Part shown: piece by piece, positions 3,403-62,880 of the stretch
Layout: each line of letters opens with the position of its first letter
Numbering within the stretch: the stretch's first letter is position 1
Notes under the pieces: model-generated
Databases searched by the model: none
Told to the model about the DNA's origin: nothing
What the model saw: only the letters and a program-made list of their open reading frames with translations
NCBI RefSeq assembly: GCF_020745735.1
Contig: NC_083404.1
Location: 13,020,001 to 13,084,000, forward strand
DNA length: 64,000 nucleotides
Reading direction: 5' to 3'
DNA from: Hemiscyllium ocellatum
Taxonomy: Eukaryota
Position numbers and translations under genes: made by a program

Positions 3403-6040
3403 TAACATAGAACATAGAAAGGTACAGCACAGTACAGGCACCCCAGCCTACAATGTTGTGCCGAGGATTAATCTGAATCTAAACTAAAATAACCTAATCT
3501 ATGCTCCCCTCAACTCACTGTGCATGTCCAGCAGTCACTTAAGTGTCCCTAATGACTCTGCTTCCACCACCACCATTGGCAACACATTCACAACTCTCTG
3601 CATAAAGAACTTCCTCTGACATCTCCTCTATACCTTCCTCCTTACACCTTAAAACTATAACCCCTCGTGGCAGTCAATCCTGCCTTGGGAAAAAGTCTCT
3701 GGCTATCGACTCTATCCATGCCTCTCATTACCTTGTGTACCTCGATCAGGTCACCTCTTTTCCTCCTTCTCACCAGAAAGAAAAGTCCAAGCTCAATCAA
3801 CCCCTCCTCGTAAGACCAGCCTTCCAATCCAGGCAGCATCCTGGACTCCTTTGCATCCTCTCCAAAGCCTCCACAACTTTCCTATAATAGGGCGACCAGA
3901 ACTGATAAAATATTCCAAGTGTGGTCTCACCAGGGTTTTGTACAGCTGCAGCAAAACCTTGTGGCTCTTAAACTCGATCCCCCTGTTAATGAAAGCCAGA
4001 ACACCATATGCTTTCTTAACAACCCTATCCACTTGGGTGGTAACTTTGAGGGATCTATGCACTTGAACACCAAGATCCCACTGTTCCTCCACACTGCCAA
4101 GAATCCTGTCTTTAATCCTATATTCAGCATTCAAGTTCAACCTTCCAAAAAGCATCACTTTGCATTTATCCAGGTTGAATTCCATCTGCCATTTCTCAGC
4201 CCAGCTCTGCATCCTGTCTATGTCACGCTGCAGCCTGCAATAGCCCTCATTACTATCAATGGCACCTCCAACCTTTGTGTCATCGACAAACTTACTAATC
4301 CACCCCTCAACCTCCTCAACTAAGTCATTTATAAAAACTACAAAGAGCAGAGGCCCAAGAACAGAGCTCTGCAGGACCCCACTCAACACTGTTCTCCAGG
4401 CAGAATACGTTCCATCTACAACCATTCTGCCTTCTGTCATCCAACCAATTCTGAATCCAGATAGCCAAATCTCCCCGTATCCCGTACTTCCTGACTTTAT
4501 GAACGGGCCTACCATTGGGTAGGCTTTATCAAATGCCTTACCGAAGTCCATGTACACCACATCCACTGCTCAACCTTTGTCAACCTGTCTCGTCACCTCC
4601 TCAAAGAACTCAATAAGATTTGTGAGGCATGACCTGCCCCTCGCAAAGCCATGCTGACTGTCTTTAATCACGCTATGCTTTTCCAAATAGTCATAAATCC
4701 TATCCCTCAGAATTCTTTCCAAAACCTTGCTGACCACAGACATAAGACTGACTAGTCTGTAATTGCCAGGGATTTCCTTATTCCCCTTCTTGAACAGAGG
4801 AACAACATTTACCTCCCTTCAATCCTCTGGTACAATTCCGCAGAGAGTGAGGAAGCAAAGAGCTTTGCCAGTGGCTTAGCAACCTCCTTTCTCATTTCAC
4901 TAAGCAACCTAGGATAAATCTGGTCTGGCCCTGGGGACTTATCAATCCTAATGTTTGCCAAAATTTCCAGCACATCAATCTGGATCTGTTCAAGCCTGTT
5001 TCCCTGTTCCTCAAAGTTCTCATTCACAATAAGGTCCCTGTCCTTAGTGAAAACCAAAACAAAAACTCATTTAGAGCTTTCACTATCTGCTCAGACTCCA
5101 AGCACAAGTTCCCTACGCTATCCCTGGTCGGCCTTACCTTCTCCCTGTTCATTCTCCTATTCCTCATGTATGAGTAAAACGCCTTTGGATTCTCCCTAAA
5201 CCTTCTTGCCAAGCCTTCTTCATGCTCCCTCCTGGCTCTCCTCAGTCCATTTCTGAGCTCCTTTTTAGCAAGCCTGTAATCCTCTAAAGCTATGCTAGAT
5301 TCTTGCTTCCTCCACCTTACGTAAGCTGCCTTCTTTCTTCTGACGAGAAGCTCCTCTGTTCTTGTCATCCAAGGCTCCTTAATCTTACCCCTTCTTACCT
5401 GTCTCTGAGAAATAAATTTATGCATCACTTGCAACAACTGCTCCTTAAACAGTCTCCACATGTCTGTGGTGCCCTTTCTGTGGAACAATTGCTCCCAATC
5501 AGTATTTCCCATATCCTTTTGATAGCATCATAATTTCTTTTGCCCCAATTAAATATTTTCCCATAATAACTGCTACTTTCCCTCTCCAATGCAATGGTAA
5601 GCGCGAGGCAGTTGTAGTTACTGTCACCAAAGTGTTCTCCCACTGCGAGATCTGACACCTGTCCTGGCTCATTGCCAAGCACTAAAATCCAAAATGGCCT
5701 CTCCCCTCATCAGCCTGTCTACATAGTGAGTAGGGAAACCCTCGAGAACACATCTGACTAAAAGCAGCTCCATCCAAATCATCTGCACTGAGGAGGTCCC
5801 AATCAAGATTGGGAAAGTTGAAATCACCCATAACAACAACCTTGTTGCGTCTGCACGTTTCCAAAATCTGCCAGCCTGTGAGTTCTTTTATCTCCCTCCT
5901 GCTATTAGGGGATCTGTAGAAAACCCCCATTGAGGTGACTGCTCCCTTGCTGTTCCTAACTTCCACCCACACTGACTCAGGAGAGAAACCTTTCTCGATA
6001 ACCTTCATTTCTCTAGCTGTGCTGCCCTCTCTGATTAGCA
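3403..6040 (-). mobile_element. CR1 LINE (second subfamily), degraded ORF2 with endonuclease and RT
   Basis: Frameshifted ORFs: ESVWVE..GVFYRSPN..VVMGDFNFP (APE), KSPGPDQIYPR, DVVYMDFGKAFDK..SVLGPLLF..ISKFVDDTK (RT); (TTCTATG)n-type tail. Confidence 0.93.
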
Positions 6041-20636: not shown

Positions 20637-20709
20637 CACCTCAGATGGGGCTTGAACCCACAATTCCTGGCTGAGGAAACCAGAGCCTTATCCATTAGGC
20701 CACTGGGGC
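20637..20709 (-). tRNA. tRNA-Arg(CCT) pseudogene
   Basis: Reverse complement GCCCCAGTGGCCTAATGGATAAGGCTCTGGTTTCCTCAGCCAGGAATTGTGGGTTCAAGCCCCATCTGAGGTG (73 nt) resembles vertebrate Arg-CCT, with a C-A acceptor-stem mismatch and a pyrimidine at position 37. Confidence 0.85.
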
Positions 20710-22284: not shown

Positions 22285-24285
22285 ATTGGACCAGGAGTAG
22301 GCCAATCAGCTCCACCATCCAGTAAGATCATGGCTGATATGTGCTTACACATGCTCTAGGCCCATATCACTTGATACCATTGCTTAATAAAAAATATTCT
22401 AACTCTGATTTAAATTTAACAATTGAATTAGCATCAGTGGCCATTTGAGGAAGACAGTTCCAAAACTTCAATATTCTTCTAGAAGTGCTTTCTAACATCT
22501 GTCCTGAATGGTCTGGCCCTAACTCTTAGACTATGCTCCCTTTTTCTTGAATGTTCTATTGCAAATAGAATAGGAAGGGAGGGATATGGGCCAAATGCTG
22601 GCAAATGGGACTAGATTACTTCAGGATATTTGGTCAGCATGGATGAGTTGGACTGAAGGGTCTGTTTCCATACTGTACAAGTCTGTGACTCTGTGCTTTC
22701 TTTCCCTCTCAATATCCTGAAAACATCAATTCAATCACCCCTAAACCTTCCCAATGTTAGAGAATAAAGGCCTTATCTCTCCTCATACTGTAAGCCCTGA
22801 AGACCCAGCATCTTTCTTGTAAACGTCTATTGAACTTCCCCCAGTGACAAAACCTCCTTCCTGATGTGTGGTGCTCAGATATACTTGCAGTGCTGTAAAT
22901 GGGGTCCTACCGTATAACTGCAGCATAACATCCCTATATTCCAGCCCTTTTGATATGAAAGTAAAAAGTGAGGTCTGCAGATGCTGGAGATCAGAGCTGA
23001 AAATGTGTTGTTGGTTAAAGCGCAGCAGGTCAGGCAGCATCCAAGGAACAGGAAATTCGACGTTTCAGGCACATGCCCTGATGATTCCTGATGAAGGGCA
23101 TGTTCCCGAAACGTCGAATTTCCTGTTCCTTGGATGCTGCCTGACCTGCTGCGCTTTAACCAGCAACACATTTTCAGCTTTTGATATGAAAGCCAGCATG
23201 TCATTAGATGTCTTGATTATTTTCTGCAACTATTGTGGCATTTTAAAGAGCATAATGGAATCCCCCCACCCCCCCCCCCCCCTCAAATATTGTTGGACAT
23301 TCACTGTACATGGAAATATCCTGATCTATCCTTTCTCAGTGTGAAGTGGACAACTCGCACTTACTTATATTGACGAGTATCTGCCACAGCTTTGCACATT
23401 CACCTAATCTATAAATATCCTGTTGTAATTTTATACTGTTGTCAATAGTGTTCACAATGCTGCCCAATTTTGTGTTGTCAGCAAATATGGATATTTGACT
23501 TTCCCCGCCATTGTCCATGTGAATGAACATTGTGAACAGTTGAGGCCCTCACACAGATCCCTGTGAGACACAACTGCTCAGGTCCTGCCAATTTGAGTAC
23601 TTATCCATTATTCCAACTCTCTGTTTCCTGCCATTCAACCATATCAGTAATTTGTCCTTAATTCTGTGGGCATCCACCTTAGCAAACAGCCTCTTGTTTC
23701 GGACTTTATCAAAAGCCTTCTTGAAGTCCATATCAACAACATCCATCAACTTACCTCTGTCCACCACCTTTGATATATCTTCAAAAAACTCTCTGAGGTT
23801 TGTCAGGCATGACCTCCCCTTTGTGAACCCACACTGATTCTCCCTGAATAACTGAATTTTTTGGAGGTGATTAGTTCCTCTATCCTAGAGGCTCCAACAA
23901 TTTCAACACCACAGATGTCAAGCTAAATGGCCTGTAAATTCCTGGTTTCCCTCTATAACCTTTCTTAAAGAGCAGTGTGACATGATCAAATTTCCAATCC
24001 AGAGGTATTGGATCTAGGGAACTCTGAAAGACTACAGTTCAGGCATCGGCAATGTGCTCTCCTACCTCCTTTAACAACCATGGATGGAAACCACGGTCCT
24101 GTGGATTTGTCACTTTTCAGTTCCATTGATTTCCAAATTGTTGATGATTTACTTAAACTGATTTCATTTAGACCCTGTCTCCAATCCTCTGTTAATTTCT
24201 TTGGGACTTCCAACAAGCTATTCTCCATTTCTGCTGTGAAGTAGAATAATGGTTTAGCATACCTGCCATTTCCCCATGGTCACTG
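22285..24285 (-). mobile_element. CR1 LINE (third subfamily), degraded, with nested inserts
   Basis: ORFs 23549-23767 (DVVDMDFKKAFDKV) and 23336-23530 (ISIFADNTKLG); HER1 tail (+) at ~22570-22695 and a PLE at 22962-23177 are nested. Confidence 0.85.
22962..23177. mobile_element. Fold-back PLE end (family A)
   Basis: 15-bp TSD CTTTTGATATGAAAG (22947-22961 / 23178-23192); near-perfect ~85-bp inverted arms; plus-strand CTGATGA..GAAACGTC. Confidence 0.88.
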
Positions 24286-28880: not shown

Positions 28881-29300
28881 TTTTTAATGTCCTGCTTTTA
28901 GCAGCTAAATCATGAAACTCATTTCACAAGACTTCAGTGTTTTTCTCTTTCTGATTCTAGCATGTCTTTGTCATCAGAAATCACTCACTGGTGAGTAGGT
29001 TAACTTTACCTTTTAGAATGAACCATAGTATTAGAATCCATTCTAACTAACATATGTCTTCTAACAGCATTTTCACTTTTCACTTGATGAGTTGATTATC
29101 TTTGAGATTACCTTTCTCACCTTTGTGTGAGATAGATAACCAGCATTGTTTATGTTACAGACAATTCCAATACTTGAAACACTAGACCTTCTCTTCTTGG
29201 GCTGGAAGGTGGCCATGTGCGACTTGTAACAGCTGAACCATGTAAGTTTGGTCACATGGAACTAATCCAGGAGTTGAAGTAGTGGCTGAGGACTTTCTAT

Positions 29301-29545
29301 TAGATTACTTACAGTGTGGAAACAGGCCCTTCGGCCCAACGAGTCCACACCGACCCACCGAAGCGCACCCACCCAGACCCATTCCCCTACAGTTACCCCC
29401 GCACCTAACACTACAGGCAATTTAGCTTGGCCAATTCACCTAACCTGCACATCTTTGGACTGTGGGAGGAAACCGGGGCACTCGGAGGAAACCCACGCAG
29501 ACACGGGGAGAATGTGCAAACTCCACACAGTCAGTCGCCTGAGGC
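29301..29545 (-). mobile_element. HE1 SINE, 5'-truncated
   Basis: V-domain and tail; TSD TTCTAT (29295-29300 / 29546-29551). Confidence 0.9.
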
Positions 29546-31506: not shown

Positions 31507-32310
31507 AGAGTCATAGAGTCACAGAATCAAAGAGTTGTACAGCACAGTAAAAGACACTTTGGTCCAAGTTTTCCATGCCATCCAGATATTCTAAATTAAT
31601 CTAGTCTCATTTGCCAGCATTTAGCCCATATCCTTCTAAACCCTTCCTATTCGGCATGGTGGCTCAGTGGTTAGCACTGCTGCCTCACAGCAGCAGGGTC
31701 CCAGGTTTGATTCCATCCTCAGGTGACTGTGTGGAGTTTGCACATTCTCCTCGTGTCTGTGTGGGTTTCCTCCCACAGTCCAAAGATGTGCAGGGTCAGG
31801 TGAATTGGCCATGCTAAATTGCCCATAGTGTTAGGTGCATTAGTCAGAGGGAAATGGGTCTGGGTGGGTTACTCTTCGGAGGGTCAATTGAGCTGAAGGG
31901 CTTGTTTCCACACTGTTGGGAATATAATCGTGTACCCTTGTAGATGCCTCTTAAATTCTTTAATTGTACCAGCCTCCACCACTTCCAATGGCAGCTCATT
32001 CCATACACGTACCACCCTCTGTGTGCAAAGGTTATCTATTCAAGCCTCTGTTAAATCTTTCACTTCTCACCTTAAACGTATGCTCTCTAGTTTTGGACTG
32101 CATTACCCTGGGGAAAAGACTTTGTCTATTTACCCTACCCATAGCCCTCGTGATCTTGTAAACCTCTATAAGGTCACCCCTCAGCCTCTGACGCTCCAGG
32201 GAAAACAGCCCCAGCCTGTTCAGCCTCTCCCGAAAACTGAAACCCTCCAACCCTGGCAACATCCTTGTAAATCTTTTCTGAAATCTTCCAAGTTTCACAA
32301 CATCTTTTCC
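31507..32310 (-). mobile_element. HER1/CR1 3' end interrupted by HE1
   Basis: ORF 32032-32463 (KDVVKLGRFQKRFTRMLPGL...) and 3' UTR. Confidence 0.88.
31653..31929 (+). mobile_element. HE1 SINE nested in HER1
   Basis: A and B boxes, V-domain and tail. Confidence 0.88.
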
Positions 32311-33085: not shown

Positions 33086-33520
33086 TTTGAGCTACAGGGA
33101 GAGGCTGAACAGGCTGGGGCTGTTTTCCCTGGAGTGTCGGAGGCTGAGGGGTGACCTTATAGAGGTTTACAAAATTATGAGGGGCATGGATAGTGGAAAT
33201 AGGCAAAGTCTTTTCCCTGGGATCGGGGAGGCCAGAACTAGAGTTTAGAGTGAGAGGGGAAAGATATAAAAGAGACCCAAGGGGCAACTTTTTCACACAG
33301 AGGGTGGTACGTGTATGGAATGAGCTGCCAGAGGAAGTGGTGGAGGCTGATACAATTGCAACATTTAAAACGCATTTGGATGGGTATATGAATAGGAAGG
33401 GTTTGGATGGATATGGGCCGGGTGCTGGCAGGTGGGACTAGATTGGGTTGGGATATCTGGTCGGTATGGACGGGTTGGACAGAAGGGTCTGTTTCCATGC
33501 TGTACATCTCTATGACTCTA
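33086..33520 (+). mobile_element. HER1/CR1 3' end
   Basis: FFTQRVVRVWNELPEEVVEA motif and terminal repeat. Confidence 0.92.
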
Positions 33521-49319: not shown

Positions 49320-49635
49320 TTAGATTAGATTCCCTACAGTGTGGAAACAGGCCATTTGGCTCAACCAGTCCACACCAACCCTCTGGAGAGTAACCCAGCC
49401 AGACCCATTACCCTCTGACTAATGCACCTGATACTATGGGCAATTTCGCATGGCCAATTCACCTGACTTGCACACTTTTGGACTGTAGGAGGAAACTGGA
49501 GCACCCGGAGGAAAACCACACAGACACGGGGAGAATGCGCAAACTCCACACAGGCAGTCACCTGAGGCTGGAATCGAACCCAGGTCCATGGTGCTGTGAG
49601 GCAGCTGTGCTAACCACTGAGCCACCATACGGCCC
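49320..49635 (-). mobile_element. HE1 SINE, full length
   Basis: A and B boxes, V-domain and tail on the minus strand. Confidence 0.92.
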
Positions 49636-50923: not shown

Positions 50924-51285
50924 ATTCTGAATATTGCGATGCTGTTTTTTTATGGCCAGACTGTGGGTGAGGATCCCCAATTTGTTACAGTTTTGGATGG
51001 GATATCCCAAACTGTTCAGGTCTTGGGTGAGAAGGAGTGAACTAGCTGTCCTCCTGTGATCACAGTACAGCCTCTTTGAAGCTTCTATGTTATGTTCCCT
51101 TTATGTGTTATATCCCACTGACCCCATGCAGAATGTTTAACGCCTGCAGTTATTCTGTTAAAACTTCTCTTTAAGAAAGATGCAGTTTGGAATAAAGAAC
51201 TAAAAAGGCCTGTATTATTTGGGCTTCTGACTTGCCATTGTAATATTTCTCTGACTGGAAGAACGAAATGGAATCCATTCTTATT

Positions 51286-51867
51286 AGATTAGATTACTTA
51301 CAGTGTGGAAACAGGCCCTTCGGCCCAACAAGTCCACACCGACCCGCCGAAGCGAAACCCACCCATACCCCTACATTTACCTCTTACCTAACACTATGGG
51401 CAATTTAGCATGACCAATTCACCTGACCCGCACATCTTTGTGACTGTGGGAGGAAACCGGAGCACCCGGAGGAAACCCACGCAGACACGGGGAGAACGTG
51501 CAAACTCCACACAGTCAGTCACCTGAGTCGGGAACTGAACCCGGGTCTCAGGCGCTGTGAGACAGCAGTGCTAACCACTGTGCCACGGTGGCACAGTGGT
51601 TAGCACTGCTGCCTCACAGTGCCAGGGACCTGGGTTCAATTCCCGCCTCAGGCGACTGACTGTGTGGAGTTTGCACGTTCTCCCCGTGTCTGTGTGGGTT
51701 TTCTCCGGGTGCTCCGGTTTCCTCCCACAGTCAGGTGAATTAGCCATGCTAAATTGCCCGTAGTGTTAGGTAATGGGTAATGTAGGGGTATGGGTGGGTT
51801 GCGCTTTGGTGGGTCGGTGTGGACTTTTTGGGCCGAAGGGCCTGTTTCCACACTGTAAGTAATCTAA
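51286..51867. mobile_element. Head-to-head HE1 SINE dimer
   Basis: Minus copy to 51586 and plus copy from 51588, fused at GTGCCAC-G-GTGGCAC; flanking TCTTATT duplication. Confidence 0.92.
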
Positions 51868-51978
51868 TCTTATTTCATTCCAAAGGGTGAAGAAGAGTTG
51901 AATGTATAAAGCAGACTTTCCTACCAACTTTCTCTCAGCCTCAGTCAATATTATCTTTAGAATTCTAACTGGGTCTCT

Positions 51979-53689: not shown

Positions 53690-54820
53690 TGCATAATGTT
53701 CAGCACCGGTCACAACTCCTCAGATATAGAAGCAGCCCATGTCCATATGGAGTGATGGACATCCAGGCTTAGGTTTATAACTGGCAAATAACATTTGCAC
53801 AGCGCAAGTGGCAGTCAATGACCATCTCCACTAAAAGAGAATCTAACCATTGCCCCTTTGAATTCAATGTCATTACCAGCACTGAATCCCTCACTATTGA
53901 CAGCCTGGGATTACCATTGATCAGAAACTGAACTGGACCAGCCTTATAAATACTGAGCAGGCCAGAGGCTAGGAAAAGTGCAGAGAATAACTCACCTCCT
54001 GACTCCCCAAAGCCTGTCCATAATCTGCAAAGTACAAGTCAGGAGTGTGATGGAATACTCCCCATTTGCCCAGATGGATACAGCTCCAACAACACTCATG
54101 AAGCTTAGGGTGGCACAGTGCTTCAGTGGTTAGCAACGTTGCCTCACAGCATCAGGGGACCAGGTTCGATTCCACCCTTAGGTGACTGTCTGGATGGAGT
54201 TTGCATGTTCTCCCATGTCTGTGTGGGTTTCTTCCGGATGCTCCAGTTACCTCCCACAGCCCAAAGGTGTGCAGGTTAGCTAGACTGGTCATGGGAAATT
54301 GCCGCTAGTGTCCAGGGATGTGTGGGCTAGGTGAATTAGCCATGGGAAATGCACGGTTACAAGGATAGGATAGGGGAATGAGTCTGGGTGGGATGCTCTT
54401 TAGACGGGCAGTGCGGGATCATTGGGCTGAATAGCCTGCTTCTGCACTGTAGGGATTCTATGATTCTACCATCCAGGACAAAACAACTTGAATGACATCA
54501 CATCCACTTCTGTCCACCAATGACACACAGTGGCAGCAGTGAGTGACATGTACAAGATGCACTGTAACTACTCATCAAGATTTCTTAGCACTTCCCAAAC
54601 CCATGACCCGCTAACATCTCGAAGGACAAGGGGGAACTATATTACCATTGTTTTACTGTCACTGGATGAAAAATCCTGAAACTCCCTCCATATCAGCATT
54701 GGATGGAGGAATGGAAGACATGGTTCAAGAGGGCACCTCACCATCATCTTCTCAAGGGCAATTTAGGATGTACAGTAAATGCTCACCAACTAGTGACACC
54801 CACAATCCATGAATGACTGA
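53690..54820 (+). mobile_element. LINE family 2 3' portion
   Basis: Homologous to the reverse complement of 35098-35930. Confidence 0.82.
54107..54466 (+). mobile_element. V-SINE nested in LINE family 2
   Basis: A and B boxes, V-domain, GGGATTCTATGATTCTA end. Confidence 0.85.
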
Positions 54821-55155
54821 AAAAAGAGTGCCTTTGGTGGCATTAAACTCTTCCATAGTCAGCAGTTATTTAGTCTCCATTATGAGAATTGGAGTTTCCT
54901 GGTTATTACTCATGCAGCATAATAAATATCATGTTTGACATATGGATTTTTAACCCAGGTTCTGATAAACCTACAATGACTTTGCTAGCATATGTTGTGC
55001 TTGGATAGGGATTAATCTGGGATCAGTCTTCATAAAACATCGAGAAAAATAATCAGTCGACAGATTTTTTGATGCTCGATGCAGCCAAACTCAGAACTAG
55101 AGCAAGTAAATTGAAATTTCTAAACTATTTTAATTGAAAGAGGCTTTAGTTAAGA

Positions 55156-55867
55156 TTAGATTACTTACAGTGTGGAAACAGGCCCTTCGGCCCAACAAGT
55201 CCACACCGACCCGCCGAAGCGAAACCCACCCATGCCCCTATATTTGCCCCTTACCTAACACTATGGGCAATTTAGCATGGCCAATTCACCTGACCTGCAC
55301 ATCTTTGTGACTGTGGGAGGAAACTGGAGCACCCGGAGGAAACCCACGCAGACACGGGGAGAACGTGCAAACTCCACACAGTCAGTCGCCTGAGGCAGGA
55401 ATTGAACCCAGGTCTCTGGCGCTGTGAGGCAACAGTGCTAACCACTGTACCACTGTGCCACCCAAACCACTGTGCCACCGTGCCACCCAACCACTGTGCC
55501 ACCGTGCCACCCAACCACTGTGCCACCGTGCCACCCAGCCACTGTGCCACCGTGCCACCCATTACACGGCACGGTGGCACAGTGGTTAGCACTGCTGCCT
55601 CACAGCGTCAGAGACCCGGGTTCAATTCCTGCCTCAGGCAACTGACTGTGTGGAGTTTGCACGTTCTCCCCGTGTCTGCGTGGGTTTCCTCCGGGTGCTC
55701 CGGTTTCCTCCCACAGTCACAAAGATGTGCGGGTCAGGTGAATTGGCCATGCTAAATTGCCCGTAGTGTTAGGTAAGGGGTATATGTATGGGTGGGTTGC
55801 GCTTCGGCGGGTCGGTGTGGACTTGTTGGGCCGAAAGGCCTGTTTCCACACTGTAAGTAATCTAATC
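55156..55867. mobile_element. Head-to-head HE1 SINE dimer with reiterated 5' end
   Basis: Minus copy, 24-nt tandem array, ATTACAC filler, plus copy from 55568; flanking TTAAGA duplication. Confidence 0.92.
55440..55560 (-). repeat. Five copies of the 24-nt HE1 5' terminus
   Basis: Unit AACCACTGTGCCACCGTGCCACCC at 55440, 55465, 55489, 55513 and 55537 (first and last with substitutions). Confidence 0.92.
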
Positions 55868-56581
55868 TTAAGAATTGTTTGTAATTTGTGATGCTTTTTC
55901 TGTTCACAGGTGACTCCAACCTATTTCTCAGAATGAATTAATTTCTTTCAGAGAGTAATTATCTTAAAAGGTAATTAGTGTAAATTTGCCTATGTATTTT
56001 GCACAGTTGATTCTCAAAATGTGCTACTGATTTTAGGCAAAATTTGGCACTGGTTAAATCTTAAATGTTAAAAATTGGACAATATATAAGTTTGATTTTT
56101 CCCTCTGTTGTGTCATTTACACACGTGCCTGCAATACACAATGACTTACATCTTTTGACTTTTGGCTTTCTACACACTATCATGAGCTCTCGTCAATTAT
56201 TATAGATAGCAAGCCTTCTCTAGAGAGAGGGTTAGCTCTAGTCAAATTGGGAAAGAGATCAATTTATGAAAGTGAGTGTTGCCAAGAAACATGGATATGT
56301 CCTGGAGAGATGGGGATTTCGAAGCAGTGAAGAACAGGAAATGTGAACTGTGTGAAAAGAATAACGGAAGCATAATGACAGGAGTGGGAGGATGGCTAAT
56401 TCTAGTTGCCAAAAGAGGACCCATAGTAGAGAAGGGGGAAGACAAAGAAGAAGCAAAAGAGAGAAATATAAGGGTAAGTGAACAGTCATCATGGGAAAGA
56501 GCTGATGGAGCAGGTGTAATAGGACAGAAAGAAATGTAGATAAAAATCTGATTCAATGGTCGTAAAGCAGCAGCAGCCATT

Positions 56582-56875
56582 AGGGTGAGAGGGGAAAGAT
56601 ATAAAAGAGACCTAATGGGCAACGTTTTCATACAGAGGGTGGTACGTGTATGGAATGAGCTGCCAGAGGATGTGGTGGAGGCTGGTACAATTGCAACATT
56701 TAAGAGGCATTTGGATGGGTATATGAATAGGAAGGGTTTGGAGGGATATGGGCCGGGTACTGGCAGGTGGGACTAGATTGGGTTGGGATATCTGGTCGGC
56801 ATGGGCGGTATGGACGGGTTGGACTGAAGGGTCTGTTTCCATGCTGTACATCTCTATGACTCTATCACTCTATGA
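56582..56875 (+). mobile_element. HER1/CR1 3' end
   Basis: Near-identical to 33250-33520. Confidence 0.92.
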
Positions 56876-60368: not shown

Positions 60369-60751
60369 GAGCTAATTGAGACATTGGTTGGTTATAAATT
60401 GATAATGAGGATGTATTAGAAAAGCTGACTATACTTTAATCACCAAGATGAGATCTGGTGCAGTCAATGGTACCAAATGAAGCCAGAATGAAAATTGCAG
60501 AGGCATTGGAGAGAGTTTTTTGATCGTCCTTCGAAGAAAACATGATGCCTGAGTGTTGGGGAAACTCAAACTTTAGACAATCATTCAAAAGATAAGGCCA
60601 CCTAACAACTGTGTGGTTAAATGCAAGCTGAATCGATAGCCAAATCTTTGTTTTATCAGATAGCCTCATTGTAACTGCTTGACTGAAATCCAAGACTAAC
60701 AAATGGACTCTGCCAGGCAAGGAGGGGAGGGGCTGGGTGGTTAACCAGTTA

Positions 60752-62880
60752 TAGAGTAATAGAGTCATAGAGATATACAGCATGGAAACAGACCCTTCGG
60801 TCCAACCCGTCCACGCCGACCAGATATCTCAACCCCATCTAGTCCCACCTGACACACCCCGCCCATATCCCTCCAAACCCTTCCAATTCATATACCCATC
60901 CAAATGCCTCTTAAATGTTGCAATTGTACCAGCCTCCACCACTTCCTCTGGCAGCTCATTCCATACACGTACCCCCTCTCACCTTAAAACTATGCCCTCT
61001 AGTTCTGCAATCCCTGACCCCAGGGAAAAGACTTTGTCTATTTACCCTATCCATGCCCCTCATAATTTTTTAAACCTCTATAAAGTCACCCCTTAGCCTC
61101 CAATGCTCCAGGGAAAACAGCCCCAGACTGTACAGCCTCTCCCTATAGCTCAAATCCCTCAACCCTGGCAACATCATTGTAAATCGTTTCTGAACCCTTT
61201 CAAGTTTCACAACATCTTTCCGATAGGAAGGAGACCAGAATTGCACGCAATATTCCAACAATGGCCTAACCAATGTCCTGTACAGCCACAACATGACCTC
61301 CCAACTCCTGTACTCAATACTCTGGCTAATAAAGGAAAGCATACCAAACACCTTCTTCATTATTCCATCTACCTGCGATTCCATTTTCAAGGAGCTATGA
61401 ACCTGCACTCCAAGGCGTCTTTGTTCAGCAACGCTCCTTCGGACCTTACCATTAAGTGTATAAGTCCTGCTAAGATTTGCTTTCCCAAAATGCAGCACCT
61501 CGCATTTATCTGAATTAAACTCCATCTGCCACTTCTCAGCCCATTGGCCCATCTGGTCAAGAACCTGTTGTAATCTGAGGTAACCCTCTTCGCTGTCTAC
61601 TACACCTCCAATTTTGGTGTCAGCTGCAAACTTATGAACTGTACCTCTTATGCGTGCATCCAAATCATTTATGTAAATGACAAAAAGTAGACGACCCAGC
61701 ACCGATCCTTGTGGCATTCCACTGGTGACAGGCCTCCAGTCTGAAAAAAAACCCTCCACCACCACCCTCTGTCTTCTACCTTTGAGCCAGTTCTGTATCC
61801 AAATGCCTACTTCTCCCTGTATTCCATGAGATCTAACCTTGCTAACCAGTCTCCCATGGGGAACCTTGTCGAACACCTTACTGAAGTCCTTATAGATCAT
61901 ATCCACCACTTTGCCCTTATCAATCCTCTTTGTTACTTCTTCAAAAAACTGAATCAAGTTTGTGCGATATGATTTCCCACGCACAAAGCCATGTTGACTA
62001 TTCCTAATCAGTCCTTGCCTTTCCAAATACATGTACATCCTGTCCCTCAGGATTCCCTCCAAGAACTTGCCCACCACCAATGTCAGGCTCACTGGTCTTT
62101 AGTTCCCTGGCTTCTGCTTACCACCTTTCTTAAACAATGGCAACACATTAGCCAACCTTCAGTCTTCTGGCACCTCACCTGGGACTATCGATGATATAAA
62201 TATCTCAGTAAGAGGCCCAGCAATCACTTTCCTAGCTTCCCATAGAGTTCTCAGGTACACCTGATCAGGCCCTGGGGATTTATTCACTTTTATGCGTTTC
62301 AAGACATCCAGCACTTCCTCCTCTGTAATATGGACATTTTTCAAGATGTCACCATCTATTTCCCCACATTCTACATCTTCTGTGTCCTTTTCCGCAGTAA
62401 ATACTGATGCAAAATACTCATTTAGTATCTCCCCCATTTTCTGCGGCTTCACACAAAGGCCACCTTCCTGATCTTTGAGGGGGCCTATTCTCTCCCTAGT
62501 TACCCTTTTGTCCTTAACATATTTGTAAAAACCCTTTGGATTCTCCATAATTCTATTTGCCAAAGATATCTCATGTCCCCATTTTGCCCTCCTGATTTCC
62601 CTCTTAAATATACTCCTTTATACTCTTCTAAGGATTCACTCGATCTATCCTGTCTATACCTTACATATGCTTCCTTCTTTTTCTTAACCAAACCCTCAAT
62701 TTCTTTAGTCATCCAACATTCCCTATACCTACCAGCCTTTCCTTTCACCCTGACAGGAATATACTTCCTCTGGATACTTGTTATCTCATTTCTGAAGGCG
62801 TCCCATTTTCCAGCCGTCCCTTTATCTGCGAACATCTGCCTCCAATCAACTTTCAAAAGTTCTTGCCTAATATCATTGAA
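60752..62880 (-). mobile_element. HER1/CR1 LINE, young 2.1-kb 5'-truncated copy
   Basis: ORFs 62500-62856, 62159-62563 and 61070-62092 tile ORF2; 3' UTR and terminal repeat present. Confidence 0.95.
61070..62092 (-). pseudogene. CR1 ORF2 reverse transcriptase fragment (340 aa open)
   Basis: QHGFVRGKS, DFSKVFDKV, GMPQGSVLG; FAAD in place of catalytic FADD, so probably inactive. Confidence 0.9.

Follow-up and report, generated by a model that had tools for sequence, protein, structure and literature searches.

Tail-out dimers of the SINE HE1 are a real, recurrent and tidy structure, found at two loci of a 64-kb window, the whole stretch of DNA analysed here. In each dimer, two near-full-length copies lie head-to-head within a single TSD. 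We propose that a single staggered, CR1-type cut supplied two 3′ ends, that each of them primed reverse transcription on a SINE tail and that the resulting cDNAs were joined head-to-head, a reading to which we assign a probability of about 0.5. This is probably an already known mechanism, priming at both ends of a cut, in a form that is undescribed for SINEs or for CR1-type partners. The sample consists of two dimers from a single 64-kb window.

Anatomy of the two dimers

Dimer 1 (55150-55873, see Table 1) is made of two HE1/V-SINE copies of ~300 bp each, with their heads inward and their tails outward. An inverted-repeat search identified an outer pair of 84 nt (55150-55233 and 55788-55871, 98% complementary) and an inner pair of 225 nt (55235-55459 and 55568-55792, 94% complementary). 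Over 293 sites the arms show 14 differences, i.e. they are 95% alike. The inverted-repeat arms and the letters themselves confirm the preliminary description of this locus, two near-identical head-to-head HE1 copies between TTAAGA repeats. Its caveat, that the TSD is short and overlaps the tail repeat, is also borne out; the TTAA part of TTAAGA is a palindrome that falls within the inverted repeat.

The junction of dimer 1 contains a stutter of the SINE 5′ end. Tandem Repeats Finder reports 5.0 copies of a 24-nt period at 55440-55561 with 95% matches, and box A (TGGCACAGTGG) lies within each 24-nt unit. With the unit coordinates, this corroborates the earlier account of five tandem copies of the first 24 nt, A box included, and a 7-nt filler. 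The array runs exactly to the SINE 5′ end. Among the four extra units none of the 88 interior bases varies, and the two differences that do occur, an extra A and a change of AA to AG, both lie at unit junctions; two random changes among 97 nt would both fall there with a probability of ~0.015. Because the array ends at the SINE 5′ end and varies only at unit junctions, the stutter looks enzymatic rather than late, and the same two features support the earlier suggestion that the reverse transcriptase (RT) re-copied the 5′ end of the RNA. The variation at the junctions looks like the pattern that would be left if non-templated purines were added and the cDNA then re-annealed at the two U at positions 23-24. 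All left units begin with GGGT, which is missing from the right arm; there the head leads straight into the body, with no mirror image of the stutter. The native head of the left arm has lost a C of box A and one CpG, and both of these are kept in the four extra units. At the junction, Rfam gave only matches of a generic hairpin kind to miRNA models, with scores far short of the gathering scores.

A pattern search of the 64-kb window for the SINE head and 3′ domain found a second tail-out, head-to-head dimer at 51279-51874, which is 3.3 kb from the first. The centre of dimer 2 consists of 146-nt arms that are 93% complementary, with 1 nt between them. Both of its heads are short by ~10 nt, the stutter is absent and the internal junction shows a CAC/GTG microhomology of 3-7 nt. 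A 17-nt internal deletion at 51733 sets the right arm of dimer 2 apart from the other three arms. A local BLAST comparison of 1 kb of flank on each side found no similarity between dimers 1 and 2, therefore the two are independent insertions. Segmental duplication of one dimer was rejected for the same reason.

Table 1. Positions of the dimer features and of the CR1-type LINE fragment in the 64-kb window.
Feature	Position	Strand	Remarks
Dimer 1, left TSD copy TTAAGA	55150..55155	.	AGA readable as 3-nt microhomology with the tail repeat
Dimer 1, left HE1 arm	55156..55463	-	full length, tail outward
Dimer 1, native head of left arm	55440-55463	-	box A mutated
Dimer 1, four extra copies of the SINE's first 24 nt	55464..55560	-	box A intact in each
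Dimer 1, extra units	55464-55488, 55489-55512, 55513-55536, 55537-55560		25 nt (first unit), 24 nt each (other three)
Dimer 1, filler ATTACAC between heads	55561..55567	.	7 nt
Dimer 1, right HE1 arm	55568..55867	+	begins at tRNA-like +1 (GGCACGG), without the GGGT of the left units; tail outward
Dimer 1, right TSD copy TTAAGA	55868..55873	.	
Dimer 2, left TSD copy TCTTATT	51279..51285	.	
Dimer 2, left HE1 arm	51286..51586	-	5′-truncated by ~10 nt, tail outward
Dimer 2, centre of palindrome (G)	51587..51587	.	one base
Dimer 2, right HE1 arm	51588..51867	+	17-nt internal deletion, tail outward
Dimer 2, right TSD copy TCTTATT	51868..51874	.	
CR1-type LINE fragment	60740-62563	-	340-aa RVT_1 ORF at 61070-62092

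Could arrangements of this kind arise by chance? In trials that scattered 8 copies randomly over 64 kb, two head-to-head pairs no more than 130 bp apart occurred with a probability of ~2e-4. The excess of head-to-head HE1 pairs implied by the preliminary description therefore holds at the scale of this window, where 2 pairs are found among 8 copies. For the flanking repeats, we fixed the tail-derived bases and drew replacements for the true flanks from the window. In ~1.5% of the trials for dimer 1 this gave a direct repeat of at least 6 nt, and in 0.3-0.4% of those for dimer 2 one of at least 7 nt, for a joint probability (as the product) of ~5e-5. Each TSD is weak by itself and overlaps the tail repeat, but the two are jointly convincing, and chance is an unlikely cause of the dimers.

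Identity and age of the copies

In structure, the copies combine a tRNA-like head, in which A and B boxes are present, with a conserved core and with a 3′ domain that ends in (AATCT)n. In the right arm of dimer 1 the boxes read TGGCACAGTGG (A) and GGTTCAATTCC (B, one mismatch to the consensus). Aragorn did not call the SINE heads in the window as tRNA genes; its sole call in the window is a tRNA-Arg(CCT) at 20637-20709 (-). We take the copies to be HE1, a V-SINE, a name that follows the preliminary description and the table in PMC3747384. According to that table, HE1 is a tRNA-derived V-SINE of sharks and rays, and its partner LINE is HER1 (PMC3747384).

The last 46 nt of the HE1 3′ domain before the tail match a LINE 3′ end at 60776-60821 (-) with 82.6% identity. 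The matched region lies downstream of an RVT_1 ORF, in a stem-loop region that is followed by three 8-nt tail repeats. Judged by this match, the HE1 3′ domain is of the CR1 type. A further LINE fragment with an RVT_1 match, a 257-aa ORF, is located at 3793-4566 (-). Matches to the 3′ domain of 31-46 nt that lack the SINE head and body occur at 33459-33504, 56803-56848 and 22647-22677, and these are probably the 3′ ends of related CR1-type LINEs.

The four dimer arms belong to a single young subfamily, marked by several shared substitutions as well as a 6-nt deletion and an extra A. No monomer of this young subfamily was seen in the 64-kb window; the monomers at 927-1229, 31653-31929, 49323-49626 and 54112-54460, and others, are of older types. 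A 5′-truncated HE1 copy at 29299-29466 (-) has a young-type tail without the 6-nt deletion, which places it between the old and young subfamilies. The monomer at 924-1229 directly follows CR1-type 8-nt tail repeats (860-930), so this SINE landed at or beside an older CR1 tail. A search of public sequence collections for the SINE head returned 0, 2 and 0 contigs, both of the contigs having an older-type head without a tail.

A local MAFFT alignment of the four arms gives pairwise differences of 4.8-6.8%, or 3.3-4.8% outside CpG, and a private change of ~3% per arm. The within-dimer differences (4.8% and 6.8%) are not smaller than those between dimers. The divergence is star-like, and as a consequence models with one RNA and with two RNAs are inseparable by substitutions. 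Nor do these differences favour descent of both dimers from a master dimer.

Proposed priming at both ends of one cut

We propose that a single retrotransposition event gave rise to each dimer, and that it began with one staggered double-strand cut by the CR1-type LINE partner. The two nicks would leave a 3′ overhang on both DNA ends, and these overhangs would become the TSD. Each overhang would then pair over 1-3 nt with the tail, (AAUCU)n, of an HE1 RNA and start a cDNA of its own. The two cDNAs would extend toward each other until their 3′ ends, which are the SINE heads, could be joined. In dimer 2 the join may have been made via the short CAC/GTG microhomology of the heads. In dimer 1 the left cDNA would have reached the 5′ end of the RNA and then been re-primed four times at U23-U24, each time after the addition of one to three non-templated purines, and the join would have been completed with the 7-nt filler. 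What the sequence shows is the anatomy of the dimers, their recurrence, their flanking repeats and junction details, and the CR1-type 3′ domain; the order of events, the use of two RNA molecules and the acting enzyme are what we infer.

Several features of the dimers bear on this proposal. There is a single TSD per dimer, with each tail abutting one of its copies and the inserts in opposite orientation. The four arms each have their own complete tail, and within dimer 2 the tail lengths are unequal. Tail-periodic microhomology of 1-3 nt is found at every outer junction, and the internal junctions show microhomology in dimer 2 and the 7-nt filler in dimer 1. An internal TSD is absent from both dimers, and dimer 2 has no room for one. 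The preliminary description had both strands of one endonuclease cut priming RT on separate SINE RNAs: the single-cut origin is supported by the joint flanking repeats and by the absence of an internal TSD, and separate RNAs are favoured, although unproven.

In place of a second RNA, the 3′ end of a single cDNA, made from one HE1 RNA in the usual target-primed way, may have folded back and copied itself as far as the tail, after which the upstream overhang would anneal to the new tail-sense end. Such snap-back junctions are known at the 5′ end of insertions driven by the R2 protein in human cells, some of them after full-length cDNA synthesis (PMC11371274, PMC11331408). The outer junctions and the TSD would be identical to those left by priming at both ends, and the TSDs overlap the tail repeat. 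The internal junctions are harder to account for. The one-base centre of dimer 2 means that there is no hairpin loop, and the sole self-pairing available is CAC/GTG one base apart, which does not form a hairpin (-0.5 kcal/mol); the joining of two cDNA ends at CAC/GTG yields just such a junction. Dimer 1 has a possible loop of 11 nt, but no paired 3′ end for priming. Moreover, a copy of its left arm should mirror the stutter, and its right arm cannot supply GGGT. Since GGGT is found on the left only and the stutter is unmirrored, one arm cannot simply have been copied from the other unless the stutter is later. Snap-back would therefore require the stutter to be a later expansion at the DNA level, yet its variation is found only at unit junctions. 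It would also require that copying stopped 0-4 nt from the cDNA-primer boundary in both dimers. Separate SINE RNAs on the two strands are favoured over snap-back of one cDNA, which we consider unlikely, though it is the strongest rival.

Other routes to an inverted pair fare worse. Inverted adjacent copies are a published hallmark of Penelope-like elements (PLEs; PMC8557442), so a PLE might have mobilised HE1 RNA in trans. That said, an Rfam scan of the HE1 3′ part (55706-55900) at E up to 1 found neither a hammerhead nor any other family, the 3′ domain is CR1-type by its sequence, and the arms are near full length rather than 5′-truncated and end symmetrically, without a one-sided extension of 30-70 nt. 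We regard PLE involvement as improbable. It is if anything less probable that two sequential insertions took place, the second just upstream of the head of the first and in the opposite orientation. Retroelements can prefer local targets, and the age of the arms, each with ~3% private change, may have allowed details to erode. However, sequential insertion is unlikely because there is no internal TSD, nor room for one in dimer 2, and because in both dimers the outer flanks make up a single direct repeat. A rare arrangement would also have had to arise twice, with arms of one subfamily and of similar divergence.

A dimer may instead move as a unit, either as a master dimer copied via read-through RNA or in the manner of a MITE, as a DNA element whose terminal inverted repeats are the SINE arms. 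All four young-subfamily arms in the window sit in dimers, and the left arms differ from the right arms at a CpG site (A versus G) and at a non-CpG site (T versus G). Neither of these sites is diagnostic: one is a CpG and the other is explicable by a chance parallel change (~0.5 expected over six arm pairs), and other sites that split the arms 2 versus 2 contradict the left/right grouping. There are four such sites in all, of which three are CpG and mutually conflicting and the fourth is within chance. We have therefore rejected left/right sites as evidence for a master dimer, and explain them by CpG homoplasy and chance. The junctions of dimers 1 and 2 are wholly different, and a DNA transposon is unlikely because the TSDs (6 versus 7 nt) and the tail lengths at the outer ends differ. 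Movement as a unit is, in our view, very improbable. We give least credence to palindrome formation at the DNA level or to an assembly artefact, even though palindromes are known from long-read assemblies and from fold-back repair. The inverted repeat reaches no further than the SINE tail and leaves out the flanking DNA. Of the words sampled from a 5.5-kb region, 77-91% are present in runs that two studies made of the same organism, a figure for the region that is not junction-specific; three related organisms have 12-37% of the region's words. As the arms differ by 4.8-6.8%, a technical palindrome is excluded.

We also considered whether annealing between two SINE heads caused dimerisation. 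The quasi-palindromic head has a predicted duplex energy of -8.2 kcal/mol, compared with -6.2 (sd 2.2) for shuffles. This is no better than the shuffles, and the pairing is also found in an older monomer, so we rejected the idea.

Related insertions and implications

Among the closest known relatives of the proposed mechanism is twin priming by L1 (Ostertag and Kazazian 2001, cited and revisited in PMC11702581). As outlined in that account, the reciprocal 3′ end of the cut primes RT and the TSD is kept, and the cDNAs are joined with microhomology or filler, as in the HE1 dimers. In the same account, the second priming takes place inside the same RNA, which results in a 5′ inversion and a single tail, whereas the HE1 dimers have near-full-length arms, each with its own tail beside the TSD. 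L1 insertions of two opposite RNAs have also been described, in which opposite DNA ends are ligated after each was extended by RT from a different template (PMC11702581). These too have an internal junction with microhomology or untemplated bases. However, they are rare, were found in human cells that overexpress L1, rely on poly(A) priming and join unlike RNAs (PMC11702581). The HE1 dimers, in contrast, are germline and fixed, have a CR1-type partner with a specific tail repeat, and combine two copies of one SINE, twice within 5 kb.

The R2 snap-back junctions place an antisense copy of the insert beside the 5′ end, possibly after full-length cDNA synthesis (PMC11371274, PMC11331408), but they need fold-back self-priming, a poor fit to the loop-less centre of dimer 2 and to the unmirrored stutter of dimer 1. 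In PLE insertions an inverted adjacent copy produces inverted repeats around the unit within one TSD; these have 5′-truncated arms, a one-sided extension of 30-40 bp and, in canonical clades, a hammerhead, none of which is seen in the HE1 dimers (PMC8557442). Closely spaced inverted Alu pairs can likewise give long dsRNA when a read-through transcript includes them, and at the DNA level they are potentially unstable, but they arise from independent insertions with a TSD each, and close inverted pairs are depleted (PMC3215922, PMC5080714). Unlike these, the HE1 dimers would have been born in one event, have spacers of 1-108 bp and have persisted. A literature search, in which few subscription journals were covered, returned no report of full-length tail-out SINE dimers in one TSD.

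The dimers may also matter for transcription. The A and B boxes of the dimer 1 arms face outward, so any Pol III transcripts would diverge without overlap; the divergent promoters that had been proposed for this locus stand as anatomy. The dsRNA proposed alongside them would not come from the Pol III pair. A hairpin of ~300 bp is predicted only for a transcript that crosses the whole of dimer 1, and read-through RNA would fold into it: the predicted fold of the locus has an energy of -646 kcal/mol, compared with -255 (sd 10) for shuffles. In read-through transcripts, such ~300-bp hairpins are possible substrates of ADAR or Dicer. As DNA, the dimers are potentially fragile palindromes, yet they have persisted to an arm divergence of 5-7%.

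A bolder version of the proposal is that concerted two-ended priming, with a SINE RNP at each of the two nicks of one cut, is a frequent and subfamily-specific insertion mode of young HE1 and its CR1-type enzyme. We consider this unlikely. If it were correct, the stutter would be the result of repeated non-templated addition and re-priming at U23-U24 in the D-loop, or alternatively of the copying of tRNA-fragment-like, 24-nt pieces from the 5′ end of SINE RNA. The HE1 dimers would then be a natural record of the second-strand step in non-L1 LINEs.

The handling of the second DNA end in LINE and SINE insertion is still debated, and the data come nearly all from human L1 and R2. If priming at both ends of one cut is the true origin of the tail-out dimers, then they are fossil evidence that the reciprocal end of a CR1-type cut is free and can start RT on the tail of a second RNA. 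The stutter of dimer 1 would in turn offer a rare natural view of how the enzyme behaves at the 5′ end of its RNA.
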